Part shown: in pieces, positions 18,673-63,818 of the stretch | Numbering within the stretch: position 1 is the first letter of the stretch | How the letters are laid out: each line of letters starts with the position of its first letter | The notes under the pieces: model-generated | Database searches by the model: none | Seen by the model: the letters and a program-made list of their open reading frames with translations, nothing else | Told to the model about the DNA's origin: nothing | Translations under genes and position numbers: made by a program | Virus record (IMG/VR): IMGVR_UViG_3300045125_000168 | Location: 1-64,000 of that record | Strand: one strand, 5' to 3' | Length of the DNA: 64,000 nucleotides

Positions 18673-19327
18673 TCAAAGATCGTCCAGTTCTTTGCGGAAT
18701 TATTTCTTCGGACGAGGCAATTTGAGAAATTCAACGCGGTCGCCGATACCGAGAGTCCCAAAGCCGTTCACGGATTATGGCCGAGATCGAGCGTGCGTCG
18801 GTTATTCGACCTGCGCACGGGCGAGGTCGGCTTTGTCTTTCCAACGCAGGCGAAGCGAGCTTGGTAATCACTCAAGTCCCTCTGCGGAAGCTATCTTAAC
18901 TTTTTTCCAAAAAGAGGCGGTCCTAGCTCTTTTTTACCCATCGAGGAAGTAACCATGATTTTTGGAAAAGAGCAAATCGCATTCGCGTCCTTTGGTGCGT
19001 GAGCTTGATGATGTCTCGCTTCGGGCTCGTGCACGGCAGATGCTTTCCGGCATCTTGAACCCGTGCTCCTCAAAATGTGCAGGCGAGCCTGTCCATATCA
19101 TCCGGTGCGATGACAAAAATCCAAATCCTGAGTCGCCCTTGGTTTGGCTTTCCTCCGCGAGAGCAAGACCTCCGACCAGGACATGCCGTTCTCTTTGCCA
19201 ACACATCTAACACGACGTTCAAAAAGCCGATGCAGTGGTAACGCAGGAGCCAGCCCCTAGAACTTGCAGACAATTCTAGGCTCTCAGATATACCTTTCAG
19301 TGTTTTCACTTTTTCGAGCCAACTCAT
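18673..19327 (-). CDS. Nucleotidyltransferase (AbiEii/DUF1814/MenT-like fold), frameshifted
   Basis: Joining frames gives HVLVGGLAL...KPRATQDLDF, the hGG-x-A...R-x-T-x-DhD NTase motif. The N-terminus is MSWLEKV. Confidence 0.7.
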
Positions 19328-19351
19328 AGCCTTACTCTTTTCTCACCGAAT

Positions 19352-19460
19352 CTTGTCGTCGGTATGTCGTCGGACAAGCGGAACACCCGAAGCAGGTAAA
19401 AAATACTGTAACCAACCAATATCACAAATTATATTCAGCCTTGTTGTCGGTATGTCGTCG
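19352..19460. repeat. Two 21-bp direct repeats, 88-bp period, upstream of the NTase gene
   Basis: cttgtcgtcggtatgtcgtcg (19352..19372) and cttgttgtcggtatgtcgtcg (19440..19460), 20/21 identical. Confidence 0.85.
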
Positions 19461-19543
19461 CAAAATCCCACCCTCTGCTTTTTCCGGTCAATTACATCAA
19501 AAACTTGAGGGCAGGATCGTCTTATGAAGACCCATTTATCCGG

Positions 19544-20079
19544 CTAATTAACTAAGGCGCGTAACCGCGCACGAGTGGAATCATGTTGGAGAGATTGAAC
19601 TCGGCGAGTCAGCAGGGCCGTGATGCTCCGATGCAACCAGGGTGAGATGCTCCCGTTCTCGGGTAAAACTCCAAGGGTCGGGATGCCCAACTGCTTGGCG
19701 TAAAGTAACTCTTGCCCCGTTTCACCACCGAAGCTCGGGCGAGTGAGATCAGTCACAATTAAATTTGCTCGCACAAGGAACCAAAGGTGCCTAAAGAGCA
19801 AATAGTAGGGCTCACCCTGATCGCCTGATAAAATAAAACGGGCAACATTTTCATACGGCAGCAACAACTCTTCTGGGATCGAAAGCACCGAGCATAGGCT
19901 TTTGGCTGCTTTCTTTTCGAGAGCATTAATAAACGGCAGGTCCGGTTTACCAAACTGAGAACCGACCAGTTCGCCTGGCTGTAGACGAGATAACCGAGGA
20001 ACACAGTGCCCTCACGCAAAGGCCCCACCCATTGCGGGATGTCTTGGAAGTTGACCACGGGATAAGAAAAATAGATCAA
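19544..20079 (-). CDS. Nucleoside 2-deoxyribosyltransferase-like (NDT fold) protein, one frameshift
   Basis: MIYFSYPV start; HLWFLVRANLIVTDLTRPSFGGETGQELLYAKQLGIP matches the NDT pattern D-x-x-x-x-x-x-A...S-x-G..E-x-x-YA...G-x-P. Confidence 0.55.
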
Positions 20080-20330
20080 AGGACGAAACTTGTTTGGTGC
20101 ACTCTGAGCGAAAATTGCGGTTGTTCCGGCTTAGTATCGACCGCCGTTTTCTCGAAACCCGCAAACTTCGCAGACTCTTCTTCTTTTGATTTTTCGTTAT
20201 TTTGTTCATGAGTCATACGTTCCACTTCACTTCGCATATTCGCCAAGGTCTGTTGAATCTGGTCGTTTGCCTTATCCATCATTTGTTTTGATGAATGCCT
20301 GGGGGTTTTCTTGGTCAAAGTAGCTCATTT

Positions 20331-21400
20331 TTACCTAACATTCGTGTGGATGGTTGCAAGTAAATGACTGATCCTCAGGCGAGTCTTCGTCTCGACGGGT
20401 TCCGTGAGTTTCATCTGCGAAACGTGTGGCAACCTGTTCGGGCTCAAACCACAGGCGTTCCATCTCTGCTCTAAGAATATTTTTTTGCAAATCTTCCAGG
20501 CAAACAAGTTGGTCATCTTGTAAGCGGTGGCCAATTTTGTGATTTTGCCCACATTTCTGAGAAGCTCGTCGGCATCGAACTTTGGCCGTTCAATCCCAAG
20601 GTCTTGAATCAGATACTCAAGAATAGCTCCGACATGATCGACGCTTTCTGGAGAGTGCGAGATCGGTGCTCATGTCTTCAATCAAGAGTTGAGTCACGGC
20701 CTCTTTGATGCTCGGGACACTTGCTTTGATTTGTTCGACATAGGGTTTCACGGCTCCAAAAAGCTCGTCCCCTGGTCTTTGGTCTTCGATGGGAAGGGTC
20801 ATAGGGAAGTCCTCAAAGGGCCAATTTTCATCGAGGTCAAATATTCCTTAATTAAAGAACTGCCCTCTTTGATATTCCAGTTGGTGGCGATGAGGTGACT
20901 GTAGATCTTTTCACCGACTTCAATAAGGCCATCTACGCGCTCGACTCCCGCCTCGATCGGCGAGAGGACGCTTGATATAACAGACTTCCGAACCCCATCC
21001 CGCAACTGGTTTAGGGGCTCGAAATACTGTTTATTCACCCAGGTAGTAGATTCTTTGAGATGAGTATGCCAGCGCACTTGCAAGAAGTAAAGATCTGTAT
21101 TCAACTCTTGCACTCGGTCCAGTGTGTGCTGGAGCCACGGCCATAATTTTGATCTGTTGCTGGAAGTCTTCATGGCGATGTGATCTTGGAAACGAAGATC
21201 GCCTTTGCTTGACGAGGAGATCACCCGCAGTTCTTTAAACTCCTGTTCAAAGTGCGGTGGAATCTCAAACGCAGGATCTTCCCGAAGCGGTGTGAGAAAC
21301 CGTTTCACCAGGACAGGATCAGCAGCATTTCTTGGATAAGGTTCACGAAAAATCCTTTTCTCAGGCGCTTATGATTGGTATGGCCTCAACGCTGAGGTTG
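20331..21400 (-). CDS. Two coupled hypothetical phage proteins (about 20799..21400 and 20331..20802), frameshifted
   Basis: Overlapping ORFs with an ATGA overlap at 20799-20802. Confidence 0.4.
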
Positions 21401-26420: not shown

Positions 26421-26423
26421 ATC

Positions 26424-27481
26424 ATGAATTTCTTTCAGCACGTTCTAGCAAAATATTCATTCTACGAAGTCCTTGGCTTGACCTTCGGTACTCCCAAATC
26501 TGAGATTCAAAGAGAGCTAGAAAAGGATCAATTTACCGCCCTTTGCTTAACGGACAAAGGCAGGGTGTATTTTGCATACAAAGCTCCAGAAGATGAAAAG
26601 GAAGTGGACCATATTTATATTGACCTAAAAAACAACAAAACTACAGTAGACGACAAACATAATCAGACTCCGGGCACACGCAAGCTGCTAGATTTCCTAA
26701 TACGGAATAAAATCATAGATAAGTCCTTTGATATCAAAACGAAATCTATATTCTTTAAAACCGAAAACGAACCTGATTTTGATTTTTTCGAGATCCAAGA
26801 AACTCTTTGACCAGGGCTATCCGTGGTAATTTTATTCTTTATCACGGCACAAGCTCCGAGGATTGGGAAAAAATCAAGACAAAGGGTCTGGTCCCTTTGT
26901 TTCACGGTTCTAATCAAAAAGGTGGGTTTGAAAGCCGCGAAAAACACCCGGAAAACACAAAGGTTTTGTATTTAGCATCGAGCAAGGATACTGCTCTTCA
27001 TTATGCTAAGGCGCGTTGCTCCTCTCTCAAAATACAGGCAAAGCGTGAGGGTAAAAATACCATGGATGACTACGGGGGTCATGGAGTGCATATTGATGGC
27101 GTCCACGTTTACCCCGTGGTCCTAGAAGTTCATGTTCCAGACGTTGCGCGCCTAGTCGCCGATGACGATTATGTGAACGAAATGGCACGGGCTTTATCTC
27201 GTAAGATCTGGAGTGAAAAAGAGGATCAAGAAAAGAAAGCAATTTTAGAGAAGCTCAAAGCATCACGAACAGACCTGTCTCCCGATTGGAGGAATTGGCA
27301 TGACCCTTTGGTACAGCAAATGTTATGGCGAGAAACGGATGAGGGCTTCAAAGAGATCATGAGCCACATCCCCAAAGAAAGATATACACAGTGGTTTGAA
27401 AGCCTTAAACAATCCAAACAAGTTGGCTATCGAGGTATCATTCCACCCAAGTTCCTTAAACTGCTGCCGATCAAAAAATGA
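26424..27481 (+). CDS. Leader-tagged protein with C-terminal ADP-ribosyltransferase-like domain (26424..26810 and 26807..27481 probably fused)
   Basis: LYHGTS...IKTKGL-x-P, LYLASSKDTALHYA and YPVVLEV are the H-Y class ART fold signature. Confidence 0.6.
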
Positions 27482-29473: not shown

Positions 29474-29985
29474 ATGGGGTTTTTACATCGGGTACTTTTA
29501 GCTCTCGAAAAGCCTGCGCTTGGTATGACGATCAACACCAGGGCGCAGGCTCGCCACGTTTTGTATGCTTCCAATCTCCCTAAAATGATTTGTGAGCATC
29601 TCATCAAATACGCTATTTTCCCGAATGACCAAGCTGCAAACCATTGGCTTACAGAATTGAATGCTTTTTTGGCGATCTCAAGGATGGTGTCGCTAAGACC
29701 ATTCAGGAACAAGGCCGCGACGTGCCTTACTACAAGTCGATGCACTTCAAAGCCAAGGATGTAGTTGAGGTACTAAACAGCAATATCAACTCTTCGGCAC
29801 TGCGAAGTCTTGAGAGAACAAAAAATACCCTGATCTTAGAAAAAGACTTCCCGAACATTTTGATAGAGGACCGCTTCACTACGGCTATAGCCTCACAGAA
29901 CACAAAGATAGCGAACAGGGCTACGTTTGGGTTTTGCGCTACCAAGGCAAAGTCTTGTGGCAAGGTTGACGTCCCACGACGATAA
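29474..29985 (+). CDS. Leader-tagged DUF29-like helical protein, frameshifted
   Basis: MGFLHRVLLA; ICEHLIK...HWLTELNAF resembles the HLLK...W-x-x-EI pattern. Confidence 0.4.
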
Positions 29986-31726: not shown

Positions 31727-32890
31727 ATGCTTAAATATCTCTGGCTGTTTTTGGTCATAGGCTGTCAGCAGCAAGGTCATTCGGATTCGACAGAGGAACC
31801 GCAAGCTCCCGTCTCTCAAATCCCGACAGGTGCAGGTGGGAATAACAGCGGTGGTGGCAATAATGGGAATCCCTCTGTAAGCACACCCGCGAATAATGCG
31901 GCAGCAGATGAGACGCAAGAGGTCAAAATTTGGCTTGCTGGCCCTCTCCCAGGCTGCGACACCAAGAAACAGGGCGCGGCCTACTACGTGCGAGAGGAAG
32001 CTATCTTCAAATATTGTGATGGCACTACCTGGACGACCTTGGACCTAAAAGGCCCACAAGGGGCTCAGGGGGCTCAAGGACCGCAAGGACCGCAGGGCTT
32101 AAATGGCATCGCAGGAGCCACCGGACCCCAAGGGCCGCAAGGTCCGACTGGAGCGGTCGGAGCGCAAGGCCCCCAAGGACCAACAGGTGCCGCAGGGGCG
32201 CAGGGTCCACAAGGCCCAACGGGACCCCAAGGGGCTCAAGGATTGACAGGACTAACGGGACCTCAAGGGGCTCAAGGTTTAACAGGCCCGCAAGGCGCAA
32301 CCGGGCCGCAAGGTCTGCCTGGGAGTATGCGAATTTATGCGGCAAACGGTGACCTGATCGGCAACATGGCGCAGTACAATTACAGTGTGTTCAAGCAAGG
32401 CTCAGATCTCATTCAAGGGCAGCTTGTGGAACGAAATGGATATTTCGCGTTCTTCCAAACCTCTTCAACCTCTCTTGGTCTGTACGCTAATTATGGCGGG
32501 GGGCCTGCAAATTATTACTGGAATACGACTACCGCTTTGAATGGCCAGAGATTTGCCACCATGGGCTACTACACCACCGCAGATTGCTCTGGGCAAGCCT
32601 ACGCCTTTTTGACTAGCGTTGCCCCAGGCTTGGAGCAAGTCAAAAACCTTGCTTTCGCTTGGGGGTCCGGCTCTACTTATATTCCAGGCTACGACGTAGT
32701 TCGCAAAAGTCTAACTTCCTCGTCAGTCACCGTTGCTTCATACCATCGCTGCGACAATGCACCCTGCACCACACCTGAAAGTTTGACCTGCACCTCTACC
32801 AGCGGTACTTACGATGTTTTCCCCGTGCAGATCCAAGCCAAACAAGGGTGGCCAGACAAGCTAAGTGCAGGCTGGTATGTCAGCAACTAA
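31727..32890 (+). CDS. Collagen-like lipoprotein
   Basis: Lipoprotein signal (LWLFLVIGC); Cys domain LPGC...[14 protein letters not shown]; about 29 Gly-X-Y triplets (GPQGAQ...); Cys-containing C-terminal domain. Confidence 0.9.
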
Positions 32891-32915: not shown

Positions 32916-33274
32916 CTAGATTTTTTTGATTTTTTGCGCCATTTGTACGGTGTCGATCTTCTGATTCCAATAATCAAGAAGAACAGCGCGATTTAAATCA
33001 AGAAACATTTGTATTTTTTTAAGGAGACTTCCTTTCAGCCTGCCTTGTATCAGTGAGCCGTCTTTGATTTTGATGCTAGGTGCTTTTTGTAGAGATTCCA
33101 TTGTGACGCGACCCTGGCCCAAAATCACTTTCACCCTTGGTCCATGCTGGCTTTCTTTGCCTTCAAATTCTCCCGCCGAAACCCAGAGGATAGCTCCGTC
33201 TACGCCTGTGCTCTTGGAGCGTAGGTTGGACATCGCTTCGATCGCAAATCTTTCAACTTGGTCTAAAAAGACAT
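32916..33274 (-). CDS. Leader-tagged DUF4160-like protein (true ATG likely 33274, needs +1 T)
   Basis: HGPRVKV...LLKKIQMFLDLNRAVLLDYWN; GGGGAG SD then ATG TCT TTT T(T)A GAC = MSFLDQVERFAIEA. Confidence 0.55.
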
Positions 33275-33893: not shown

Positions 33894-34567
33894 CTAAATG
33901 TTGGTGATTCGTTTTCCGTGTTCATAAATCTCACGCAGTTCTTTTTGACCCTCTAGTGCTGGGATCGAAAAGCGACCGTCTTTTCCCAGCTTTGCCCCTC
34001 GTGTCCAACGCAACTCCTTGGTCTTGAACAAACGACCGTCTTGAAGTAAGGCTTGTTGGATGACATCCTTCTGCTCTTTGTTCGGGCGAAGAGTCCAAGC
34101 ATAACCGAATTGACGACTCTTGATCGGAAGGATTAAGACGAAAAATTCCTGGTCTGCTTCCTCGATATAGGTGATGTCGCTTTTCTCACTGACAAAGTGT
34201 GGACCTTCAATGGAATTGATCTTTGTGGCCCAACGCTTGAAAAACTCGCCATGGCCTTTATGCGAGCGGTTGATCTTGCCCTTGTTCTGCATGAAATCGA
34301 CATGATGGATAAGTTCATGCAGCAGGATTCGACGACGGGTTTTGTCGTCGTTCAAAATATTTTTCTGCACCAGAATCGTGGTTGTATTCGGACTTTTTGA
34401 ATCATAGGTGCATTTGCCAAGCCATGGGCTTTTGGGATTATTTACAATTTTAAAATTTGGAATAGAGATATCGGAAAGGCGGAAATATTTTCGCAATAAT
34501 TTTTCGCCTCTGTCTCAAGGGCAGAAACGGTTTTTGCGGTGACTTCAATGCGCGTCAAGAAAGACAT
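33894..34567 (-). CDS. Leader-tagged SprT-like zinc metalloprotease (frameshift at about 34500)
   Basis: WLGKC...ILLHELIHH...HKGHGEFFKRWA; ATG 34567 gives MSFLTRIEVTA. Confidence 0.85.
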
Positions 34568-41566: not shown

Positions 41567-42013
41567 TTATTTGATGAGATGTAAAAGGTCAGGTGCATAT
41601 TTTTTAAGCATCTCACGAGCAAGCTGTTCCTCATCCCAACTAGCATCGACCGCTCTCAACTTTTTTGCCCACACCAAAAACTCTGATCCTGCTTTGTCGA
41701 GAATTTTATTTTTGCCCGTGACGATGGTGCAGGTATGCACGAAATCCTGGTACGCCTCTTGGAAAGCGCGGTTGCGGTCGAAGCGTGATTTTGTCTTCAC
41801 CTTCTTGGGATCGAACATCTCCGAGATTTTTTGAAGAGACGCCCTATCTCTGCATCCCAAGAGTGGTCATACGCCAAGACTTTTGCATATTGGTCGCACA
41901 CAAATTCATCAAAAGCACCGTTGAGCCGTGAGCGCATGAGATCAGCCCAACGGTCTCGATTGTAGGCCATTGCGAAAATGCGATATTGGCGTTTAATTTT
42001 TTTTAAAAAACAT
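41567..42013 (-). CDS. Leader-tagged hypothetical protein (MFFKKIKRQYRIFA-MAYNRDRW..., needs a -1 correction in an A8 run)
   Basis: GAGGA SD before ATG 42013; MAYNRDRW..LNGAFDEF resembles the 29474 and 63818 proteins. Confidence 0.5.
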
Positions 42014-42018: not shown

Positions 42019-42614
42019 TTAATCCAATGACATCATACTAATAATAATTGTACGGCTTAAAAACTTAGCGTCTTTCTTGCCCCACAAAAGAGTTTCTCTT
42101 TTTTTAACTTCGTTCCAAGTTTTCGCCTCGAAAAGGGTTCCATGCTCATTTGTCAAATACACAAACAAACCTCTTTTTAATGCTTCTTCTGTGCGGCTCT
42201 TGGTCCATTTTTTCGCCTTCGGGAGTGTTTTCTTCACCAAGAACAACAATCCCATACCGAGGCAGCAATTCTTCAAACAAGCAGTAGACACCTAACGGCA
42301 AGCCATTGATGCGCAAACTTTGGCACTATCTCTTTTCCATATTTGTTCTAACAGGATACCCTTATGCAGAGGACGGAAATTAAGAAAAAATGATATTGGA
42401 GCTTCCGTATTGGCTTCCAAAAGACTATCGAGGTATCGTAAAGATTTAAGCTACCTTTGGCGTCCTGATAAAGGATCTCCGCTGTTTTAGATTTAAGCCA
42501 TTTTGCAGCTTCTCTGTTTTTTTCTGGGTGTACTAAATCATGCTCAAGCCGGTCTACCTGCCTTGGGGCAGAGGTGACTATGTATTTTGCTTTGATGCGC
42601 TGATTGGAATCCAT
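42019..42614 (-). CDS. Leader-like N-terminus hypothetical protein, frameshifted
   Basis: MDSNQRIKAKYIVTSA; ORFs 42348..42614 and 42019..42291. Confidence 0.45.
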
Positions 42615-45506: not shown

Positions 45507-46749
45507 CTAGGTTTTAAACCCAGCGAAATACCAAGGCTGGAAGACGCAGCCCCTACAAGTTAGCTCTTTGACAAAAGCATCACCTATACTTTTTCTCAGA
45601 ATATTGATGGCTCCATTGATATCTGCGTTCACGAGCTTTCCGAGAGAGGACTGAAAAAGACCTCGTTTTACTCGTTTTCCCAGATATTTTTCTTGTCGAG
45701 AGATAGGCTCTAAGGCCAAAGAATCAGTTTTTGAGGTGTAGGATTCTTCGATAGTCTCGACGGTGAGGCCATGTTTCTCTGCTTTGTACTGCAAGAGAAA
45801 AAATTAACTTAGCGTGAGGAATTTGCACAAAATTCTGGTTGTTAATTCTTCCGAGATTGACTTCATTTTTCCAACCGATGTTTTTTCCGATAACGATCTT
45901 AGATATGTCGTTACTCAAGCAGTAAGAGATGATGTTACTTGAGACCTTATGCAGCGTGTCTTTAATTCTCCTCGACCTTTTCTTGGTGAGAGATATTTTC
46001 TGCTGCTTGAGCTTCATTTTTAAGGTTATGTTTTTCAAGGTCGATCTGGGATTGAAATTCAGCAGACTTTTTATTGTAGAACTGGTTTTGCGATTTGAGC
46101 TTTTTTCCTGAGAAAAGAAAGGCGTCACCGTCTGAAGACACGCAAGCTGCAAGGTTATTGGTGCCAAGGTCTATACCTAGAACCTTAGAAGTCTCGACCT
46201 TAGGTTGTTCCTCAACTTCATAGCAAAACTTGATTTTGAATTGCCCGTGAGACTGAGGTTTTAGAATTACGAGATCGATACTCTGGTCTTTAAGATACGA
46301 GGGAATCTGGAAATGGAGAAACTTCACCCCATACCTATTTCTCAAATATTTTGAAAGGCTGACTCTCACTTGACCATTTTCAACAGAGGAGACGGTCCAC
46401 CAAACTCTACCTCGAAAAGACCGTTTTTCTTATATTGCGGTGGTCTTATTTTCTCGTCAGGTTTTGCGACTTTTAGGTGTTTGAAAAAACTTTGGTAGTC
46501 TCTGTCTACGCGGTAAATAATAGCCTGGGAAACCCAAGAATTGAGCTTGTAGTATAGCTTAGGATTTTGATCTCTGACTTGGGAGTAGATTTTATACTTA
46601 TTGAGGTACTTGCCCTCTGTTTCTCGAAAAAACTGACGTTGATTGTACAGTGTGTAGTTATAGAGGCATTTGGAAATGTGTGAGGCTTCAGAAAGAATTT
46701 TCTTTTCCAAAGAGTTGAGGTTTAAGATTTCTTCATAGCTCAATATCAT
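45507..46749 (-). CDS. tnpB: TnpB RNA-guided endonuclease, 3 frameshifts
   Basis: N-terminal CLYNYTLY; RuvC-I GIDLGTNN; IVIGKNIGWK; EESYTSK; RuvC-III NADINGAINI. Confidence 0.9.
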
Positions 46750-48238: not shown

Positions 48239-48607
48239 TCAAAAATAAAGGCGATTAAATCGGGAAAAAGGGAGTCCAGTCGGTGTCCTCGGAGAAAAGC
48301 CGTAAGAACTCCCCGAGCCTTCAAAAGCATGGGTGCAATTGGCAGGTATCACTAGCAAGTCGCCCGGACCAACGGTGACGGAAATCCCCTCAAAATGAAA
48401 TGTAGGCGGGTCTTTTTCCGAAGCCGCTAGACATAACCGCAACTCCTGATCAGTATGGTAATGCCAACGGGCAAACGTCTTTCGCATCTCCGCACTTGCC
48501 TGACTGGTGTCCACACGGTCGTAGCGTGTGCAGGCATGAACTTGCAGCATCTCGTCAATGCTGTTCAAGAATGCTTGAGGGTCCACTTTGAAATGCGAGA
48601 AAACCAC
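48239..48607 (-). CDS. Cupin-domain protein (may continue by frameshift toward 47700)
   Basis: WHYHTDQE...VGPGDLLVIPANCTHAF cupin motifs. Confidence 0.7.
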   Translation of the reverse strand: MVFSHFKVDPQAFLNSIDEMLQVHACTRYDRVDTSQASAEMRKTFARWHYHTDQELRLCLAASEKDPPTFHFEGISVTVGPGDLLVIPANCTHAFEGSGSSYGFSPRTPTGLPFSRFNRLYF

Positions 48608-48972
48608 TATGGCTCCTTGCGGTCAATCGCATCCATCTCAGTCCGAAGATCATCAATATCCATGCCGTCGTCATACCACATCTTGAGGTATGCATGTTGG
48701 TACTTTTTCACATGCTCTACGATCATTTTCAGTTCAGATGAGTTAAGAAAAACGTCTCCCACAACACGAAAATCTCGCAGCATGATCGAAAAGTTTGGCC
48801 CTGTTTCAGGGCTACCTTTGAACACCTTGATGCGTTCCGCGTGAGGGTGACGTTTATCCCCAGGCTGAAGGACATTGAACTTTATGCCCTGAGGTAAAGG
48901 CAAGCGATATACCCGCTGCGGCACGTTTGCCATGGCATGAACTAGGTTATCAATTTGTGGCAAAAAACTCAT
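48607..48972 (-). CDS. Leader-tagged DUF4160-like protein
   Basis: MSFLPQIDNLVHA-MAN; RHPHAERIKV...ELKMIVEHVKKYQHAYLKMW; pattern similar to 32916..33274. Confidence 0.55.
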   Translation of the reverse strand: MSFLPQIDNLVHAMANVPQRVYRLPLPQGIKFNVLQPGDKRHPHAERIKVFKGSPETGPNFSIMLRDFRVVGDVFLNSSELKMIVEHVKKYQHAYLKMWYDDGMDIDDLRTEMDAIDRKEP

Positions 48973-50426: not shown

Positions 50427-52837
50427 AGGCTTCTCCTACTGACAACTTGCGGTGATACCAAGGATAGGGCGTCAACTTCGTTTTTCGTTCTCTGCGCTCC
50501 GCCAACCAGAGGTGATCTAAATGGCCTGAATTTTTCAGACCCTTCAAATGGCTGACAATCACGATGGAACGGTCAGGGAATGTCTCCTTCAGCTTTGGTA
50601 TAGCCACATCGGTAAAGGCTTTCATCCCCGCTTCATCGAGGTTTGCTTCGATCTCATCTAAAAATAAAAGGTTCGTTTTTTAGTCGGGGGAATCAACTCC
50701 AACTGTGCAAACAGAAGCACACGAGCCGCTCGGTTGCGTTCACCCGCACTCAACAAGGCTACAGGATACGGATCTTCTTTCTTGAGATTAGTCGGTGTGA
50801 CAAAAAGATTCAAGTCGTCAAGGTCTTCGCTGAGGGACCACTGGTAGGGTTCTTGGAAAAGATTTGCGACCAGTAGTTGGCTCGCTCCACCAAAAGGCGA
50901 CATCTCTGCTTTAGCTCGTAGAGCTTAAAGCCCGAGGGGGAGTAAAAGTCAGCAGCGACTTCTAGCTTGCGGCTGAGTTTTTCAATGCCTCGTAAGGCTC
51001 GACCCGTTTTTTCAAATCCTCACGGGACTCCAGAAGCTCCCGCCTTTGCTTAAGCTGAAAAGTGTAGGTTCCGCGAATCTGTGCGGTTTCCTCAATCTTG
51101 GCTTTAAGCTCGGGTAGGATTTCCGCCTGCAACTCTTGAAGCCTTGCTTCCAGTTCTCTCAGAGGGGGAAGAGCCATCACAAGATCTATCAGGCGTTTCA
51201 ACTCAGCGGCCTCTTTCAAGGCCAAAGCTCGCTCTTTCACCGATTGGCTCAGGGCTTGAACTGCGACCTCAAACTTCTCTTCTAAAAGCCCTGGATAACC
51301 TAGAGCCCTGGCCTCTGCCTCAAGCTCTTTGTCGCGAGTGAGCCATTCTTGATTCTCGTCGGTTCTCTTACGATAAAGGTTCCAGGCGAGACTTTCTTTT
51401 TCCAAAGTCTCCAACTCGCTCTTCTACCTGCGGTAGAGTCAGACCAAAGACAGGAAATTCGTCGAGACGCTTTTTCTGAAAGGCAATCTCTTGCTCTTTC
51501 TTCGCATGGTCTTTGAGTGTCACGGAAAGAGCGTTCAGTCGCAACATCTCGGCTTTGAGAGCCGCAATTTTTCGCTTTTGCCTTTTCAGGACTTTCTGTT
51601 TTGATCTGTTCTGGGAGATCTTGACCGCAGGTCGGACACTCGCCTTTGCCATGGGTCTTTTCTAAAATCGAGAGCGATGCTCCCACTCGACGCGATCACC
51701 TTGCAGCTTGAGCCGCTCGGACTCAACACTTTCGACCGTGACCCCTTCAGGAAGTTCGGGGAGCTTTCCTAACAAGTCGCGGAGCGTTTGCTTGACCGCC
51801 ATTTTTTCATTCATCTGGGCAAGCAGGTGCTTTTTCTCGGCAAGGCTTTGCGGGGTCGGTTCTAGGAAATCCGGTTTTTCCGGCAGGTTTTTCGGTTGTC
51901 TGCTTTTGTGCGGAGTAAGCTGACGAGTGACAAAAAGGCGCAGCTTATGTTGTTGGTCTACTTTTCCACGCAACTCCTGAAGCTGACTCTCTTCGAGCTT
52001 TTGCTTGTCCTCTTCTTTTAAAAGATCGAAGTCCTCATACTTGACCAGGAGCTTATGGTACTCCGACCAAGTGCCCACTTGGTTGCGGAGCTTTCCGCTT
52101 CTTTTGTATAGGTGTCCTGCTGCGACTGAAGGAACTGAGAGATTTCCCGAGAAAACTCCACTTGCCGCTCAAGCCACAAAGACCCTGGCAACTTTTCCAG
52201 GGCCGACTCTACCTCCAAGAGACGCACCTGATCTTGCTCGACTAACCGGATATCCTGTTCGACATCACGGACTTTTTGTTTGTAGTTTTCTAACTGTTGA
52301 AGGTAGTAGGCATCGATATTAAAAAATTCTTCTAAGTACGCTCGCCTTTCGGCAGGCTTTCCCTTAATAAGAGTCCTTAGGGAGTCGCCATCAATCTGGA
52401 CAAAGTACGACCACTCCTCCCGTGAGATGCCGATCGTTTGCTGCAAAAACCTTGCACGTCGGAACTTTTGTGCGAGATCGCTTCCAGCACGGACCCGTTC
52501 TTTTTAACTTCCCAGTCACCCTCCTTGAGTGAAAAAGACCAAAGGGTTTTGGTGCGCAGGTCTTCAAACTCAAGTGTGCCTTGAAAAGCAGGGGTGACCA
52601 TTTTCTTAAACGGCCCCCGAGCGGTTTTGCCGTAAATAAAACCTTCTAAAAATCTGACCAAGCCGTGTCTTGCCCGTGCCGTTGCTGGGCGTGTTCATCG
52701 GATCGTTGTCGTCCTTAGCCACGGCGTCGTAGTTCGTTCCGCGAAAAAGCGTGAGCCCAGGCGTCCCCAAGGGGGATCGTCGTCTTCTGCTGGTAGAATT
52801 TGTCACCTGAAAAACTAAAACTGATAAACTTAATCAT
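50416..52837 (-). CDS. sbcC: SbcC/Rad50 (gp46-like) ABC ATPase, many frameshifts
   Basis: Walker A SNGTGKT; coiled coil with Zn hook CPTCGQ; signature LSAGE; FLDEIEANLD; IVSH. Confidence 0.9.
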
Positions 52838-53456
52838 AAGTATAATACCCAGGCTTTGCGATCACAAGAAAGGCGCATTTGGAACTTTGGCAGAAGCTCC
52901 CCAAAGAAGATCAAAGATTTTTTTAAAATGATCTTCAGACTCGATTTTTTAACTGTCCCAAACTCGTTTTCAGCAAAAACATCGAATCCCCGTGCCAAAG
53001 CAAGACCCACTTGACGTTTCCACCAACGCGCACCCTCTGCGGTGTGCTTTTGGTCACTGATGACCGCTGAGAACTCCTCGATTAAAAAGAAAAACGTATA
53101 CTGAGGAATGGTCAGTCCTTCGAGACGAATCCCTGCCAGATCGCTTTCTTGATCTTTCCAAAGGTAATTTTCCACGCAGGACGCTCGACCCAAGTGCTCT
53201 TTCCGCTCAAAAATCGACACAAATGCTATCGGTTTTACTGCATTTTCGCGTTCGTCTAAGAGCGCCACTGCTGAATCATAAAGTCTCAGGGTAACTCCTG
53301 GTCGAACCTGCTTGAGCAGGACGCCCTGATTTTGAAAGACATCTGCATACATTTTTCCCGTTTTCCGACACGCTATCGAGATTATGGTCGAAGAAGTCAA
53401 CTGCGGCAAAGCCGTGACGAGTTGATATTTTTCTTTTAGATGCTCAAAAAGGACAT
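52834..53456 (-). CDS. Leader-tagged GNAT-like protein (ATG 53456 overlaps the dnaX stop; needs +1 T)
   Basis: MSFFEHLKEKYQLVTA after correction; ISDQKHTAEGARWWKR resembles the phage GNAT SD-x-x-QT-x-x-G-x-x-hW motif. Confidence 0.5.
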
Positions 53457-55490: not shown

Positions 55491-55493
55491 GCA

Positions 55494-56871
55494 CTAAATG
55501 GTGACCTCAGAGGCAGTATCATCCTCATCATCGATAGAAACTCTGCCCTTACTCGCCTTACTGCTCTTGCTCGGCTTGGTGTCGGGATTGTTCTTCAAAT
55601 ACTCATAATAAAGCTCTTGGGCTTTGCCTTGGCGGATTAACTCAAACCCAGCGTTTCGGAGTTTTGTCCCCTGCTCATCACTTAAAATCATAGCTTTGAA
55701 CTTTTGCCAAGTGATGTCACCCTCGAATCCTGAGAGCGAGATGTGCATAGTGTTGCCCATCTTCTCTTGCATGAGACCGCAGTGCTTCAGAAACATGAAG
55801 GTATCGTATACGGGGTCGATGCCCATCCCTGGTGTGCCTGCGGAGTCAAGCCAGAGACGATATTCCATATTGCGGAAGCTCGGACCAAATTTGTTTTTCT
55901 GGATTTTGGCGGTGCCGATGAAATAGCGGTCTTCGCCATGCCCATCGACCGTCTTTTCCGTAATCATCTTGGATTGACTACGCTTGGCTTCGATGCGCAA
56001 TTTGAAGTCGGGATAAAATTGAACGGAAGATCCCCCTGGCTCACTTTCGGGATTCTGAAACATCGCCATGGGGTTGATCGTCAAGTGGTTGGTGACAAGC
56101 CACGCGCAATTTTTGCGTCCGATGTAAGACTTTACCAGCGGGAAATGCGCGGCAAAGCAGCGGGCTTGAATGGCAACAGGCTCTTTCTCGGGCTCTTCAT
56201 CACGCGCTTCGGGGAGCATCGCTTTAAGCGAGTCGGTGATAAAAAGCATCTGGGGAGCGAAGTTTTCCGCTTCGACCACGAGCTTCTTTCAAACCTTCGT
56301 TAATGTGTCTCCAGGTCGGCTTGTACTCATACTCGTTCGCAATCAAGAAGTAGCGGTAGCAGCTTTCTTTATCGTCCCAAAGTTGGATTTTATCGGGCAG
56401 CTTTTTGAGAATGCTGTTCATATACCGAAATGTACTCTCAGCCGTAGTGCCAATGGCATAACGAAGCTGAGGAGTCACTTCCCAGGTGCCCTTTTTATTG
56501 CGGAACCCACACAGTTTATTCAGATCAAGCCCGATATTTTGCAGATAAGTCGGGTCGAATGACGACTCGTGGTCATTAGCTACCACTAAGGTCTGACGGG
56601 CGATCGCTTCTTTAATGGTATGGAAAAGAAACGTGCTCTTACCCGCACCTGTCGGACCTACGAGCGACGACATACGGCCTGGAGCAAAGCCTCCACCCAT
56701 AATGAGGTCTAAGGATAAAAGACCGCTCGAAATCGCTCCATTGACTCGCATGGACGGGTCCATCGTGCTGTAGACAAGCCCTTGGTTGTGGGCGGCATCG
56801 TCCAGAACCTTGTTGATATCCATGATCGACTGCAAACCGTCAAATTGCGTCAAAAGCGCATCTTGCGCCAT
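55494..56871 (-). CDS. recA: RecA/UvsX recombinase, one frameshift at about 56280
   Basis: SSGLLSLDLIMGGGFAPGR; GPTGAGKST; TDSLKAM; LVTNHL; EPGGSSVQFYPDFKLRI. Confidence 0.93.
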
Positions 56872-57095
56872 GGTATGCCCCGTTGTTCTCTCGTGATCTT
56901 AGCTCCGAGCATACCGCGCCAAGGGGTTTGTGCAACGTGGACTATTTCTCGATAGTGCCTCTTAAAGGGATTATCGTAAAATACTACACTGCTTCTTGCG
57001 ATTCCTTGCAAACTTTAGTTTCAACAGAACGCGACAACAAAAATCCATCTGTTGAACTGGTACAGGTATATTTTTCTGCCACTTTTCTGAAGAAA

Positions 57096-58950
57096 CTATA
57101 CATTCACCTTACCCCCAACCTTGCACACGGCTCGAACTTCTTCTTCCGTGAATTTTTTTGAGTTTTCTCCGCACAAAAAGTCTTTACGGACTATCTTGGG
57201 TGCTCCCTCAAGCGACATCAGATTGTTCCAGGTGCAATAAAAACTGCCACCGACTTCCTTAGGAGATCCTTTCAATGATTCTATTTTATTTGTAGTACAA
57301 TCGAATGATTGCCCGACAAATTCTGGTGCTCCCTCAAGAGTTTTGAGATCATTCATTCGGCATTCGAAATAAAGATGAACCTTCTTGGGTCCGGCAACTA
57401 AAGACTGAAGTTTGTTTCCGCTGCAAATAAAAAATCCGTCAATTCTTTCCGGTGCTCCTTGCAGAGACACCAGCGCATTTTGACCGCAATCAAAATGTTG
57501 ACCAACTTTCTTGGGACCACCTTTCAAAGACGTCAGTCTATTGCGAGCACATTTAAAAATGCCGCCCACCTCTCTTGGTCCTCCGTCGAGAGAAAGGAGT
57601 TTGTTGTCACTGCAATAAAAATCACCCGTGACGATATCCGGTGCTCCGACAGAGACGTCAACCCTAGACCCGAAGCGTTCACATTACCCTTCTCGTCTGC
57701 CTGCCATTTGAAGGTGAATACTTCCATCTCAAACGAAGGTATTTTCAAATCGTCTGGAAGAGAAGAATGCTTTTGATCTAGGCTATCCCAAACAGTCACT
57801 TGACCTTGCATATCCTTGAGAAGAGCGATCTTAAACCAGGGGTCTTTCGAGTCTCTGGTCTTTGAGATCAGAAAATAAATATTGTTTTTGCGGCTATACT
57901 CTTGCCAATAATGACTACTTTCATGCTTGATGCACCACTCGGTCCCTTGACCTAACTTAGAAGACGCTTCGTTCGTGGTGATCTGATAAACTGTCCACTC
58001 GTCGTTCGCTGTAATAAAGATTGCTCCAGGAATTTTTTCCCGGAGATCAACCTTGCCTTTTTTCTTCTCCGTTGCGGTCTTGGTCTTTTCTAAGTCCTCC
58101 ACTCTTTCTTGAAACTCTTTAAAAGACCTAGACCCCAAAGGTCGATATTTTTTTCATCGTCTTTGAGCTTGTTGCGATCCCTCAGCTTTTTAAATCGATC
58201 AAGGTAGTCTTGGACCTGAGCTTTCTCAATACCCTGATCTAAGAATTTCTTCTCAACCGTTTTGAAGTCTGATGTGACAACGTATTTCGCGAGAACTTGT
58301 TTGAAAAAGCCGCTACATCGAAAAGCCCTCTTAGCAGGAGATTCTGTATTTTTGCAGCGACCTTCTGCTGGAACGAAGGAAAGTTTTTCAGATACTCCTG
58401 TTCGTCGATCAGGCCCACCTGGACATAATCAAACCCGTGCAGCTTACAGACTTTTTGTGTCGGAAACCCACCCTTAACGATACCAGTACACACCTGTCCG
58501 ACCAACTCGGTGAAAAGAGCCGTGTGCGCCTTAGGGGACACAACTTTCAACTGGCGATTGTAGACACCTAGCTCACCTCCAGATCAAACCTGTGCCCGCG
58601 ACCTTTTTTATAGCCTGCAAGGTGACCTAGAGCGTCATGAACAGCCCTAAAAATATGATTCTCTTCTTCGGTCCAAACCGGATGAGAAGAATGCCCTGTA
58701 TAAACTTTAGGACACGGTTTTGCTGCACGTCTTGCCGCATGTCTTCCATGCTGCGGTAAGGGTCGATCTCCGTGAACTCAAACTGGAACTGACTTTGCAG
58801 ACGTTTGTACATGGTCTTGAGATTGACTATCAAAGCCTTCCAGCTTTCGACATACTCTGCTTCAAACTTCGGTCGAGCGAGGTAAGCCTCAGCGACCTTA
58901 TGGGCGTAAGAGTTGTAATTGGGAAGGACGAGCTTGGCTTCGACGTGCAT
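57096..58950 (-). CDS. Multidomain (polyvalent-type) protein: HD/H-motif domain, W-C (PcfJ-like) domain and leucine-rich repeats; joined across frameshifts
   Basis: MHVEA start; DPYRSMEDMRQDV...HPVW..EENHIFRAVHDALGH...GELGVYNRQ...ALFTELVGQ; ASSKLGQGTEWCI; at least 6 LxSLxG[AS]PxxVG repeats. Confidence 0.65.
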
Positions 58951-58995
58951 ATATCCCCCGTGTGCGACTTGAAAAAATCTTTCACAGGGGGAGTG

Positions 58996-59083
58996 CGGAG
59001 AGAGTGGGATTTGAACCCACGTTACCCTTTTGGGGTAAACTCGCTTTCCAAGCGAGCGCCTTCAGCCACTCGGCCACCTCTCC
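58996..59083 (-). tRNA. trnS-GGA: tRNA-Ser(GGA), CCA not encoded
   Basis: GGAGAGGTGGCCGAGTGGCTGAAGGCG, anticodon arm CTCGC-TTGGAAA-GCGAG, long variable arm, T-arm GTGGGTTCAAATCCCAC, acceptor TCTCTCC-G. Confidence 0.95.
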
Positions 59084-59300: not shown

Positions 59301-59327
59301 GTTATTCTTTGACGAGGTATGTAACCC

Positions 59328-59615: not shown

Positions 59616-59827
59616 TCGAGGACTACAGAAAAGAAACCCCTCGTGAGAGGGGGTGGAGTGAATCTATTTTTTTGAATGCTCCATCAAGATAGCCTATGAG
59701 GCCCTTCACGAGAAATTCAAAGCCGACTTTCAAGCTGAAGTGAGAAATATAATGTCTTCCTACCTTGAAGAATTAGACTCTACTTTAGAAAATATAAACT
59801 ATATTCTTATTAAAGGATGATATTAAA

Positions 59828-61002: not shown

Positions 61003-61033
61003 GACCTAATCCGTCACGCTATCATTGCAAGAC

Positions 61034-61546
61034 TCAGAGAGCCGAGTCCTCAGTTATCCATTCCATTGCCGCATCTTCCGCAGCTACCCCATCAGCATGA
61101 TCTTCCGAAATCGCTCCAGGGTTGTTAAGAACTAGCTTGTATTCGATCTTCTGGTATTTCTGTCCGAGCCTATAAGTCAGGTCCCAGGGTTCGTTAGGCA
61201 TGTGACTATCGATCATCAATGTCGCGTCGTCGGCTTCCTTAAAAATATCGGCCAGACGTGTCATGATCCTAAGTTCTCGTCGTGAAAATAGCTTGTCGTT
61301 GAAATCGACGTTTGGACGTACATCCCAATCGATATCGTCAATACGAGTGAACATAACAGCACCAGCTAAGTCTGCCTTTGGTTGCTGGATTTCGTCGTGA
61401 AGTGCGACTGGAACTGGCCCATTCGGCCAAGCATAGTAATCGAGCCCGGTAACTATTCGGCCTGTTTCCTTGAAGTGCTCGAAATCCAAGAATGCAAGCA
61501 GCTTGAATAGCTTCCATTTGCGGCAATTCTTTGTGTTTGAAACAAA
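61034..61546 (-). pseudogene. Panacea (DUF4065/SocA-like) antitoxin, C-terminal part; interrupted by IS element 2
   Basis: FVSNTKNCRKWKLFKLLAFLDFEHFKETGRIVTGLDYYAWPNGPVP...FSRRELRIM...SHMPNEPW. Confidence 0.88.
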
Positions 61547-62732
61547 TTGACGCCCTCCCCATGGCTAAAGCCAGGGATTCCTAACTCACTTTAGAAGTTA
61601 GCGCATCGCGCCCGATGCGGAGAATGTTCAGTGCTGCGTTGACATCTCTATCGTGGATCGCTCCACAGCCGCAGCACACCCACTCTCTTATCGAGAGACC
61701 TTTCACCCCTTTGGGGGAGCTTTCTGGAATTACTCCACAGAAAGAACAGGTCCTCGTTGTGTTGGCCTCATCGACCTCCACGTACCAACGCCCACGCGCA
61801 CTCGCTTTGTATTTGAGCATTGTCTTAAACATCGTTGTCGCGGCATCATTGATGGACTTAGCCATTCTTGTTTTGGCAAGTTTTTTTGCACCAAAGTTTC
61901 CGACAACAATCACCTTATTTTCATCAGCAATCTTAGTGGTAGCCTTATGCAGATCGTCCATGCGCTTATTTTTGATTTTGGCATAGATACCTTTAGCTTG
62001 CCTTTTCTTTTTCCCTCTCTGTGCCTTTGCGAGCTTGCGCTCCATCATTCCGGTAGTAGCGTCCGTTGGACACCTTTTCCCCGTTTGATAGGGTTGCTAC
62101 AGATTTCAATCCTAAATCTATGCCTACCTCACCTTGAACTTTAGGTGCTCGTACCTCGTAGTCTATGGAGACACAAAGATACCATCTCCCGCGAGAGTCT
62201 TCGCAAAACTCACCTGCTCCATGAGCTACATCAGGCAACCGTTCCGGCTGAAACAATTTAAACTTGTGACCAGCGTAGGTGGCTTTGCCGTTTTTAAAAG
62301 AGATCCCTGTCTTCTTGAAAGGTATCCAACCAAGGGATTTTTTTCCACGCCATCTCAGTTTTCTTTTTTGGCTTTTTTGTCTTCTGAGAGCGTATTCCTG
62401 ACAGACCTCTTGGATGGTGGTCGAGTTAAGACCTAATTCTTTGCTAGAACCTTTTGTGAGCTTTTCTAAGTCTTGCGCGTTGAGCCACCGGCTATGGTTT
62501 CGCAAGGCATAAAAAGAAGTTTCATTACAAAAATTCCAGACATAATTGACGGCTCGTGCCATTTGTTTCAGGTGCTTGGCAGTGGCAGCGTCTTTTATGC
62601 GAATTTTAATAGTTTTTTTTGACATCGCATCGCGATGTTTACACTATTTTCGGCACCTTTTCAAGGTTCAGCTTCGCTGGGCGCGGCTTATATCCCCATG
62701 CCTAAAGGCAGGGGCTTTACGCCGTTTTCTCG
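61547..62732 (-). mobile_element. Non-autonomous IS200/IS605-family element 2 (tnpB only) with IS608-type ends
   Basis: LE hairpin CCCCTGCCTTTAGGCATGGGG with guide AAAG and flanking TTAC; RE hairpin CCCTGGCTTTAGCCATGGGG with guide GAAT, ending TCAA. Confidence 0.92.
61581..62625 (-). CDS. tnpB: TnpB RNA-guided endonuclease, one frameshift at about 62050
   Basis: QMARAVNYVWN; GIDLGLK; IVVGNFG; VDEANTTRTCSFCG; CCGCG..HDRDVNAALNI. Confidence 0.93.
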
Positions 62733-62780
62733 GTAAATGATCGCATGAATTAACTTTTCTCTTTGCGTGGGCAGTTTCAA
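62733..62780 (-). pseudogene. N-terminal 16 codons of the interrupted Panacea gene
   Basis: TTG AAA CTG CCC ACG CAA AGA GAA AAG TTA ATT CAT GCG ATC ATT TAC (MKLPTQREKLIHAIIY) joins in frame to FVSNTK at 61546. Confidence 0.85.
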
Positions 62781-62891
62781 TTTCTTTGCTCACCCTTTGC
62801 GCGTCAAAGAGTCAGTTACCCGGAAATCCCGGATAACTGATTATCCCAAATAACTCTTTAACATGCTGTAATTACTGGCTTTTAAGGCTAG

Positions 62892-62980
62892 TGGCGGAGG
62901 GGTGGGATTTGAACCCACGGACCAGTTTCCCAGTCGCGGCCTTAGCAAGGCCGTGCCTTAAGCCACTCGGCCACCTCTCC
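62892..62980 (-). tRNA. trnS-GCT: tRNA-Ser(GCT), CCA encoded; acceptor 3-prime strand one base short (probable indel error)
   Basis: GGAGAGGTGGCCGAGTGGCTTAAGGCA, CGGCC-TTGCTAA-GGCCG, variable arm, GTGGGTTCAAATCCCAC, ...CCCTCC-G-CCA. Confidence 0.92.
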
Positions 62981-63048
62981 ATCGAATGATGAATCAACTA
63001 TATCTCCCACAAAGATTTTTTCAAAGAACTTCTTGGGAGATCTTGTCG

Positions 63049-63393
63049 ATGTCGTTTCTCAAACGCCTGATGATCCTTGCCGTGAAGAAAACCGAATACT
63101 TTGTCTGGGACGAGATGGAATCCGATGGGATCGCTATCGGACCCTCAGCCAAAGAAAATGTTATCCTGCAAGTGCTCGGCTTCTCCAAGCTCGGTCTGCG
63201 CATCGCAGGACAAGCGCCGTTTGAGAAGTTCAAGTTCAACTGGTGGAGTCCCAACTCAGGCTTGATTCATACCGAACTAGAGGTCGTTACCCAGTCCAAA
63301 AACTATTTTGAAGCCAAGTTTGTGGGCTCAAACCCAGCGATCCAACGCGAGATCAAATTCTGGGAAAAACGCTATCCCAAAAAGGTTAGCTAG
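63049..63393 (+). CDS. Leader-tagged hypothetical protein
   Basis: GGGAG SD then MSFLKRLMILA; internal ATG of ORF 62986..63393. Confidence 0.55.
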   Translation: MSFLKRLMILAVKKTEYFVWDEMESDGIAIGPSAKENVILQVLGFSKLGLRIAGQAPFEKFKFNWWSPNSGLIHTELEVVTQSKNYFEAKFVGSNPAIQREIKFWEKRYPKKVS

Positions 63394-63818
63394 GTGAGAA
63401 CGTGTGCCCTGGTGTGGGTTCGAGGATATCGCGAATAAATTTTTCGACCATCTTTTCCAGGTTACCTTCGTCAATCATCACAGGCGAAAACCCTTCGTTG
63501 ACGATTTGTGCCGCCAATTCGATGCGGTCCCCTTTCTCACCTAACGGCTCAGTCCACAGGGCTTTGTACAAAACTTTGCTGCGAATAAGTGCCCGTTTTG
63601 CCTTTCGAGCGGTGCAATCGACGCAGTTGGCCGTTCCAAGCGCGAAGCTCTTTCAGCGAATGAAGGTAGGCGTTAGGAGTTTGGTAGTGAGTGATTTTAA
63701 ACAAATTTTTCGCGATTGGTAGCTGCAACTCGGAAAGTTTGTTGAGCGCCTTGCTACGGTGAAAAGCGTTGCTCCGCACTTCATTTATTTTTTCTTGGAT
63801 TTTTTGCAAAAAAACCAT
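63386..63818 (-). CDS. Leader-tagged DUF29-like protein, frameshift at about 63560
   Basis: MVFLQKIQEKINEVRS-NAFHRSKALNKLSELQLPIAKNLFKI...LKELRAW. Confidence 0.45.

Follow-up and report, generated by a model that had tools for sequence, protein, structure and literature searches.

Bacteriophage T4 loads diverse defence-countering proteins into its scaffolding core by means of a capsid-targeting sequence (CTS) (PMC3012670), which is cut off by the prohead protease after loading (PMC3012670, PMC5694885). The inner-body and ejection propeptides of giant phages are likewise thought to target the prohead and are removed by the prohead protease, and the SPN3US paralogs gp53 and gp54 have MANFVKSKLARESVE in common (PMC5694885). 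ART-PolyVal and zincin (SprT/MPTase) domains belong to early-phase effectors of phages, for which packaging and injection have been predicted or are known (PMC5512222). Here we analyse a short N-terminal leader peptide that recurs on diverse proteins of an uncultured giant phage, starting from the window, a stretch of 64,000 nucleotides that comprises bases 1-64000 of IMGVR_UViG_3300045125_000168 (236,430 bp). The parallel with the T4 CTS drawn by the original prediction holds in form, since the N-termini that we read from NC_000866 (MKTYQEFIAE for ipII and ipIII, MKTFKEFTST for ipI) also have only a short stretch, MKT[YF]xEF..., in common.

The viral record (UViG) corresponds to bases 1760-238189 of the JGI scaffold Ga0494335_066 (351,605 bp), of which 1-175.6 kb were examined, 111.6 kb of that beyond the window. 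Thirteen leaders were found in the window, all within 19-64 kb (Table 1), with the overall consensus M-[S/x]-F-[FL]-x-[KRQH]-[VIL]-x-x-([KR]-Y)-x-[VIL]-x-[AGS] over 11-17 residues. Twelve N-termini had been listed before; a sequence check confirmed all of them at their positions, and eleven were retained. The twelfth, MHVEA at 58950, lacks the F-[LF] core and obtains no score with a position-specific scoring matrix (PSSM). The consensus proposed earlier occurs in several variants, MSFLx[QKR][VI]..., xFFx[HQK]VLAKYx[VI]VT[SA] (type B) and MxFLx[KR][VL]x[VIL]LA, and W can replace F. Two additional leaders, 57103- and 58318-, were uncovered by a regular-expression scan for the type-B sub-motif FFx[HQK]VLAKYx[VI]VT[SA]; the latter is less certain (probable), because its frameshift lies away from any homopolymer. 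Intact ATG starts, most with a Shine-Dalgarno (SD) site, are present in nine of the twelve listed N-termini, whereas at 33274, 42013 and 53456 the ATG is one base out of frame with the body, in runs of T5, A8 and T5, respectively. The one-base correction at 33274 could be verified, because protein P0017 of an independent ENA assembly, >90% identical to the 33274 product, starts in frame with MSFLGQVERFAIEA followed by MSN; the corrections at 42013 and 53456 are plausible from the sequence.

The raw DNA pattern ATG-NNN-TTY-YTN was not significantly enriched in the six frames (23 versus 16.1 +/- 3.8 in shuffles), and the leader was therefore tested on real starts and on independent data. M-x-[FW]-[FL] opens 6 of 85 stringently defined starts across 175 kb, while 0.79 would be expected. 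With type-B regular expressions of 11 and 8 residues, 4 and 6 matches were obtained compared to 0.03 and 0.43 in shuffles, and these matches lie at gene 5' ends with the exception of the C-terminal KELLKKYPV at 43836. In a hold-out test, the 13 window leaders alone served to train a PSSM, with which all peptides beginning with Met in the unseen 111.6 kb were scored. At thresholds of >=8, 10, 13 and 20 bits this yielded 7, 6, 4 and 2 matches, compared to means of 0.39, 0.13, 0.04 and 0 in 100 dinucleotide shuffles, showing that the motif is commoner than in shuffled sequence, as the original prediction had implied. Three more N-termini are leader-like by inspection: 157380- (MSFLEKVRCLA), which scores just 2.4 bits, as well as 106178+ and 137049+, which are outside the thirty best PSSM scores. 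Altogether, PSSM and inspection give at least nine or ten hold-out leaders. The starts at 106178, 136477, 137049, 137246, 138173, 152072, 157380 and 165649 are JGI-called gene starts, among them the five top PSSM matches within the coverage of the JGI calls, a comparison that excludes 118.8-127 kb, where 122184 and 125306 fall. At least 22 diverse proteins are thus leader-tagged in the 175.6 kb examined, and it is established that the leader is a translated, peptide-selected, modular N-terminal tag recurring genome-wide.

None of the leaders is located in the tail module (1-18 kb) or in the replication block (64-100 kb); those beyond the window are scattered over 106-166 kb, and four leader genes in a row are tightly clustered at 136.5-138.3 kb. 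The DnaB, RecA, SNF2, primase and PolA genes and the major capsid protein have no leader. Both the concentration in accessory regions on unrelated bodies and the absence from replication and structural genes were thus correctly foreseen. By inspection, the leaders do not qualify as Sec, Tat or lipoprotein signal peptides, which are expected to have an n-region, a core of ~10 or more hydrophobic residues and an AxA or lipobox site; the leaders have only 11-17 residues with a charged residue every 3-4 positions, and true signal peptides of the same genome, for example at 31727+ and 33884-, look unlike them. The first of these genes (31727-32890, +) encodes a protein of 387 amino acids whose N-terminus resembles that of a lipoprotein or a signal peptide and which contains a long stretch of collagen-like G-x-y repeats.

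How the tag relates to the protein behind it can be followed in the family of the 48972 protein, named MAN. All its homologs keep an invariant Met (MANVPQRVY...), and this Met is preceded by nothing (P0002), by an amphipathic extension of 13-19 residues (six homologs) or by 65 residues. The SprT homolog P0011 starts with MRFAYRVEAAN followed by MAEV..., and the homolog P0010 starts at the post-leader position. A Met at residues 12-19 is present in 8 of 22 leaders compared to 7 of 76 control starts (p=0.0045). Judging from these sequences, it looks as if the tag had been placed before complete genes, often upstream of the original start Met. SD sites precede the leader ATG and not the internal Met, and in the T4-like fragment L006 the leader ATG overlaps the stop codon of the upstream gene. 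In the AlphaFold model of the MAN protein, residues 1-12 form a detached helix (predicted local distance difference test, pLDDT, 41), and a confident domain covers residues 14-119. Models of cellular DUF4160 proteins align to it from residue 13, with template modelling (TM) scores of 0.52/0.71 over residues 13-102; a Foldseek search of the model against the PDB returned nothing significant.

The [VIL]-x-A-like end of the leader, at which cleavage had been proposed, was found again in the enlarged set: 21 of 22 leaders end in [VILC]-x-[AGS], compared to 31 of 76 control starts (p=2e-6). Among MAN-family proteins, the invariant Met comes directly after one of the three-residue sequences VHA, ITA, VCG, ITG, VYS, VHS, VYE and VCE, the last one in the homolog of L006, where a leader of 17 residues ends in V-C-E directly before this Met. 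L006 also encodes a Peptidase_S77 (gp21-type) protease and a Gp23 capsid protein. T4-type proteases cleave after Glu (PMC5694885). The leader of this homolog of a tagged window protein thus ends in the cut site expected for the T4-like phage. Both the conserved [VILC]-x-[AGS] ends and the V-C-E leader beside a gp21-type protease favour a function like that of the T4 CTS. A capsid protease that cleaves after Val-x-Ala would not be unusual, as herpesvirus assemblin, which has the gp21 fold, cuts between A and S in (V/L/I)-x-A-S.

The tagged bodies belong to different families or to none. The earlier statement that they are unrelated does not hold for all of them, since at least two window genes are DUF4160-like paralogs; the remaining tagged bodies are without family. 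For the 33274 body the match to PF13711 (DUF4160, E=8.7e-4) stays under the cut-off. Of the functions assigned earlier, SprT is well founded (PF10263, E=1.5e-9, 38.1 bits with a cut-off of 25.6; the sequence contains HELIHH), whereas the ADP-ribosyltransferase (ART) body matches PF18760 (E=5e-4) with 21.3 bits, under the cut-off of 31.2, and phrog_13493 with E=2.7e-7; its relative in the fragment L003 was called PF18760 by JGI. The 128-aa open reading frame (ORF) behind the 26424 leader is probably fused to the ART ORF via a T-run frameshift near 26782-26788. The nucleotidyltransferase (NTase) and GNAT labels were not supported in Pfam and PHROG searches of the gene pieces: at 19327 no family was matched, and an NTase is possible from a fragmented G-S...D-L-D-F-like stretch seen by eye, while the 53456 body (52834-53409) gave no GNAT match and instead matches phrog_1349 (E=1.7e-5). 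An HExxH protein of L006 (MSKFEEV...) was considered as SprT-like homolog and rejected, as it belongs to PF18894 (BLASTP E=0.1).

Related fragments contain similar genes. L003 (JGI Ga0074475_10034791; 889-1874, 4298-6134) has an intact ART-PolyVal gene with the leader MFKHRVLAKYHVVAK adjoining a MAN-family gene, and two AcrVA2-like genes lie near this pair. In L024 (JGI Ga0163144_10096749; 2681-3330, 4247-4642), three neighbouring genes have a consensus of their own, ..[LI]xKAIxx[VI].., with the leaders MDSILKAIDRIV.., MSNLIKAIHNVLA and MSDINEKAIIKI. Two of these three are homologs of tagged window proteins, and the homolog of the 33274 body has a different leader there.

Taken together, the leader may be a modular address label, an N-terminal amphipathic helix of 11-17 residues that evolution would have placed before complete, unrelated proteins and that one common partner would read. 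The most likely partner would be the assembling prohead, through its scaffold or core. Tagged accessory enzymes would then be packaged into the capsid, the tag would be lost at a [VIL]-x-[AGS] site, and the untagged enzymes would enter the next host with the DNA. The putative cargo comprises DUF4160-like proteins, a metallopeptidase of the SprT type and an ADP-ribosyltransferase resembling ART-PolyVal, together with many proteins of no known kind. By analogy, the best single explanation we can offer, and one that we hold tentatively, is that the leader serves to load proteins into the virion and is removed at [VIL]-x-[AGS]. This explanation is based on the T4 CTS, on the ART-PolyVal and SprT cargo, a combination of ART and zincin metallopeptidase that favours packaging and injection, and on the V-C-E leader of the T4-like relative; from these we infer partner, packaging, cleavage and injection. 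It might also be, which we would say even more guardedly, that the lineage has its own peptide 'zip code', in sequence unlike any described capsid-targeting signal and present on a considerable part of the phage genes (at least 22 in 175.6 kb), that loads a large exchangeable arsenal of small effectors and is served by a non-Glu (Val/Ile-x-Ala-type) protease, or that sends proteins to an undescribed destination in the infected cell.

Several observations speak against a loading signal of this kind. The charge of the leaders varies from -2 to +5, and a single docking surface is therefore not obvious. The putative P1 residue is Ala, Gly or Ser, whereas it is Glu for all characterised T4/phiKZ-type proteases. 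The major capsid protein (UViG 148765-149853, -; phrog_2522, E=6e-57), which is ~33% identical to those of the jumbo phages Yoloswag, Lu11, BCSR5 and Motura, has an N-terminal extension of just ~24 residues and no long propeptide, thus extensive maturation by proteolysis is not indicated. Neither a prohead protease nor a portal, scaffold or terminase gene was recognised in 1-175.6 kb of the 351.6-kb scaffold, and in a search with 40 head- and tail-region proteins of Yoloswag, including the head maturation protease, the capsid protein alone matched. When a profile of the type-B leader was compared with 1.84 billion representatives, only the window protein, the ART of L003 and an unrelated repeat protein were found at E<=1e-3; since no other lineage was reached, the tag is lineage-restricted at this sensitivity. 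The sequence AAAGATT(TTT) is located upstream of 5 of 23 leader genes and of none of 76 control starts, which suggests an expression class apart, perhaps an early one, whose genes are interspersed with those for RecA and helicases. Finally, the sequences give a mixed picture of phage-specific co-variation of the leaders, which is supported by L024 but not by the ART leaders.

In IMG/VR, the exact back-translated type-B leader was found in the window itself and in one chance match without an ORF. The KMPT-N domain of Yoloswag gp141 was considered as origin of the type-B leader and rejected, as the window proteins do not match KMPT-N. No recognisable head module adjoins the major capsid gene (UViG 146580-149853; L019:10652-13925), which is followed by a 665-aa HTH/GIY-YIG/HNH homing-endonuclease-like gene. 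At UViG ~172.2-173.9 kb (L021:1745-3496, -), an ORF of 583 aa encodes a very acidic, Ala/Glu/Lys-rich, apparently helical coiled-coil-like protein with an HEEEH-type repeat end. It has no Pfam or PHROG match and is a candidate scaffolding protein.

Instead of the prohead, another partner could read the leader as a docking or localisation peptide: it could serve as an in-plane membrane anchor, direct proteins to a phage-made compartment or a shared chaperone, or act as an N-terminal degron timing the removal of early proteins. We consider this the second-best explanation but rather unlikely, even though the modelled leader is an amphipathic helix detached from the fold, several leaders are strongly basic and hydrophobic (MSFLKRLMILAVKK, MFFKKIKRQYRIFA, MVFLKKLLVLA), the leader genes lie with their own promoter-like motif among replication and recombination genes, and a capsid protease was not found in the 175.6 kb. 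Membrane binding fits poorly with those leaders that are acidic or neutral (MSFLDQVERFAIEA, MSFLPQIDNLVHA), and for the compartment version no chimallin-like or compartment gene was noticed, without a systematic search for one. In addition, a removable propeptide would account better for the retained Met and for the conservation of the [VILC]-x-[AGS] end, and the leader of the T4-like relative ends in a gp21-type site.

It might also be possible that the peptide has no function of its own and is the in-frame remnant of a mobile cassette of promoter, ribosome-binding site and start codon, its recurrence reflecting common descent. A Met directly after many leaders is what a fusion upstream of complete genes would produce, a subset of the leader genes has an upstream motif in common, and the ART leaders of the window and L003 are more alike than the leaders within either genome. 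Nevertheless, we regard such a remnant as improbable. The leader DNA has diverged and its synonymous codons are mixed, with AGC (3), AGT (2), TCT (2), TCG and TCC for Ser2, five codons for Leu4, and AAA, AAG or CGC combined with TAT or TAC for K/R-Y, while the amphipathic amino-acid pattern has been kept. Orthologs with 56-61% identity still have leaders, as do distant phages, and the upstream regions have only short motifs in common.

A signal at the RNA level is very improbable. Here, the U-rich tract after AUG (AUG-NCU-UUU-UUG) would act as translation enhancer or as an operator for a RegA-like repressor, for which the T-run in codons 2-4 of many leaders and the apparent co-regulation of the leader genes could be put forward. 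Ser2 is encoded by AGY as frequently as by TCN, though, position 4 includes CTC, CTT and CTA, position 3 can be TGG, and the raw DNA pattern is not enriched. Residues 6-16 are conserved with an amino-acid logic (K-Y, [VI]-x-[AGS]). With unlinked synonymous codons and conservation extending to residue ~16, neither an RNA-level element nor a recently copied DNA cassette is a sufficient explanation. That the N-termini were picked by chance from the six frames of a frameshift-ridden assembly, as the unremarkable raw count of ATG-x-F-[LF] and the three corrected leaders might make one suspect, is already refuted by the hold-out replication, to which the JGI-called starts, the independent ENA sequence and the homologs in other assemblies can be added.

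A motif, (A)AAGATTTTTT, is located 20-45 nt upstream of many leader genes. AGATTTTTT is found 47 nt upstream of the 26424 leader, and AAAGATTTTTT 36 nt upstream of the 63049 leader; the exact AGATTTTTT occurs ten times, never in the tail module. This promoter-like motif precedes several leader genes and was not seen before structural genes; it may be the promoter of a distinct temporal class. Two tRNA-Ser genes (58995-59083, - and 62893-62981, -; anticodons GGA and GCT) each adjoin a gene with the upstream AAAGATTTTTT motif. A second start-proximal motif, CCGATA(A/T)(G/A/C)T, stands 15-35 nt before some ATGs, including that of the MAN gene of L003; CCGATA is not enriched overall (47 versus ~49 expected). 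A sigma-70 promoter scan likewise showed no enrichment.

The phage is tailed, with a baseplate wedge protein (phrog_6) and a minus-strand tail module at 1-18 kb, and the window also encodes a DnaB-like helicase, a RecA-like protein and an SNF2 helicase. Megablast of the window gave no DNA match to cultured phages, and the MAN and baseplate proteins had no tblastn match among them; in these searches only the capsid protein matches cultured phages. Of the 351.6-kb scaffold, IMG/VR kept 236 kb as viral and cut off the remaining 113 kb (238190-351605); if these are phage as well, the genome would exceed 350 kb, the alternative being host sequence. Many genes are split by frameshifts, for example at window 40041-41557, 55494-56871, 61581-62625 and 45507-46749, and all junctions inspected are at homopolymer runs. 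The JGI gene calls are fragmented in the same manner. The genetic code is standard; stop-codon reassignment was rejected as cause, because no single reassigned stop accounts for the breaks and the inspected junctions lie at homopolymers. The frameshifts are probably the signature of long-read assembly errors, and the contig needs polishing; the Logan run SRR33648778 contains a gene identical to one of the scaffold. Since the leaders contain a T-run, such errors matter for them, and N-termini and gene lengths from this contig should be taken with caution. Among the split genes are two TnpB/IS605-OrfB-like genes (PF01385, PF07282) at 45507-46749 (-) and 61581-62625 (-). Elsewhere, an intein (weak Intein_splicing match) interrupts the family-A DNA polymerase (UViG ~84-88 kb, L011:5830-8935), and two genes for subtilisin-like S8 peptidases (UViG ~119 kb and ~135-136 kb), one with a signal peptide, are an unusual phage cargo.

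Table 1. Leaders, tagged bodies, hold-out matches and start-proximal motifs. Positions are those of the UViG, which up to 64,000 are also those of the window.
Feature	Position	Strand	Remarks
Leader MSWLEKVKTLKGISESLELSA	19265..19327	-	Type A, W for F; PSSM 22.5 bits; downstream body broken by several frameshifts
Leader MNFFQHVLAKYSFYEVLG	26424..26477	+	Type B; 128-aa ORF; PSSM 29.2 bits
ART-PolyVal-like ADP-ribosyltransferase body	26807..27481	+	Cargo of 26424 leader if the two ORFs are fused
Leader MGFLHRVLLALEKPALG	29474..29524	+	Met directly after; PSSM 17.8 bits
Leader MSF(L)DQVERFAIEA	33234..33274	-	Met directly after; T5 run puts assembled ATG out of frame
DUF4160-like body of 33274 gene	32916..33233	-	Pfam PF13711
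Leader MSFLTRIEVTA	34535..34567	-	SprT-like metallopeptidase gene; frameshift near 34470; PSSM 23.5 bits
SprT-like zincin metallopeptidase body	33894..34496	-	Pfam PF10263
Leader MFFKK(I)KRQYRIFA	41971..42013	-	Met directly after; requires A7 in place of A8
Leader MDSNQRIKAKYIVTSA	42567..42614	-	Type B without FF; PSSM 27.8 bits
Leader MSFLPQIDNLVHA	48934..48972	-	Followed by invariant Met of MAN family
MAN family protein body, DUF4160-like fold	48607..48933	-	
Leader MSF(F)EHLKEKYQLVTA	53410..53456	-	Type B; requires T6 in place of T5; body 52834-53409
Leader MYSFFRKVAEKYTCTSS	57053..57103	-	Absent from earlier list; 39-aa ORF, strong SD; PSSM 29.8 bits
Leader ..SGFFKQVLAKYVVTSD	58267..58318	-	Absent from earlier list, probable; SD and ATG, then one base out of frame; body runs towards 57533
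Leader MSFLKRLMILA	63049..63081	+	Intact 114-aa protein; PSSM 23.2 bits
Leader MVFLQKIQEKINEVRS	63771..63818	-	PSSM 26.9 bits
MHVEA	58936..58950	-	Non-member: no F-[LF] core, not among PSSM scoring sites
Hold-out match MDFQRKVEAKYRIVAA	136477	+	>=8 bits
Hold-out match MFLQRVKKKYQPKMVTSS	165649	-	>=8 bits
Hold-out match MHFLQRVAVLAKSAT, followed by M	122184	-	>=8 bits
Hold-out match MVFLKKLLVLA	152072	-	>=8 bits
Hold-out match MSFLFKVQSRYQLTA	138173	+	>=8 bits
Hold-out match MRFYDHVKNKYLLQA	125306	-	>=8 bits
Hold-out match MGFFDALKLKYGVEGG	137246	+	>=8 bits
(A)AAGATTTTTT motif sites	window 25403, 26377, 28472, 34597, 58972, 63013; UViG 122.2, 125.3, 136.4, 165.7 kb		
CCGATA(A/T)(G/A/C)T sites	window 29449, 42639, 49007, 59294; UViG 97051; L003 ~1480		

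If the leader is a packaging signal, the "first-strike" proteins that an uncultured giant phage injects could be identified from sequence alone, yielding more than 20 candidates for host takeover or anti-defence, most of them without known family. A T4-style removable label on exchangeable cargos would then have arisen in an unrelated lineage, in which the code differs and the protease specificity probably differs as well. Loading tags that are short and transferable would also be of practical use for bringing foreign proteins into phage particles. If the leader has another reader, a peptide on so many phage genes still defines a new, directly testable functional class.

The leaders can be compared to several known systems. 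Encapsulation peptides of bacterial microcompartments, encapsulin cargo-loading peptides and the N-terminal payload signals of Photorhabdus virulence cassettes and extracellular contractile injection systems (PVC/eCIS) illustrate that one short amphipathic peptide at a terminus is enough to bring various cargo proteins into a contractile particle or a protein shell; they serve different machines, are usually not removed and are unrelated in sequence to the leaders. In polyvalent proteins (Iyer, Burroughs, Anand, de Souza & Aravind 2017), the domains are fused in a giant polypeptide, whereas here small stand-alone proteins have a short leader in common, and the paper on polyvalent proteins (PMC5512222) describes no leader. 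The giant phages phiKZ, 201phi2-1 and SPN3US package many proteins, as the phage studied here would do, but their propeptides are unlike the leaders, being mostly >100 residues long, cut at A/S/G-x-E and common to paralogs rather than to unrelated proteins. The T4 CTS (IPI, IPII, IPIII, Alt) is likewise a short N-terminal peptide (10-19 residues) on unrelated, fast-evolving accessory proteins of one phage, and its cargo includes an ADP-ribosyltransferase (Alt) and anti-restriction proteins. It has no sequence similarity to the leaders beyond a general style with MSF[LF]x[KQ][VI], and the phage studied here is not T4-like, having PolA and a Lu11/Yoloswag-type capsid protein, while gp21, gp22 and gp23 were not found in the 175.6 kb. 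At least 22 genes are tagged here compared to a handful in T4. By analogy, the leader may be the principle of the T4 CTS written in a new sequence code, for which the specificity of the protease would probably differ and the set of cargo proteins would be unusually large.

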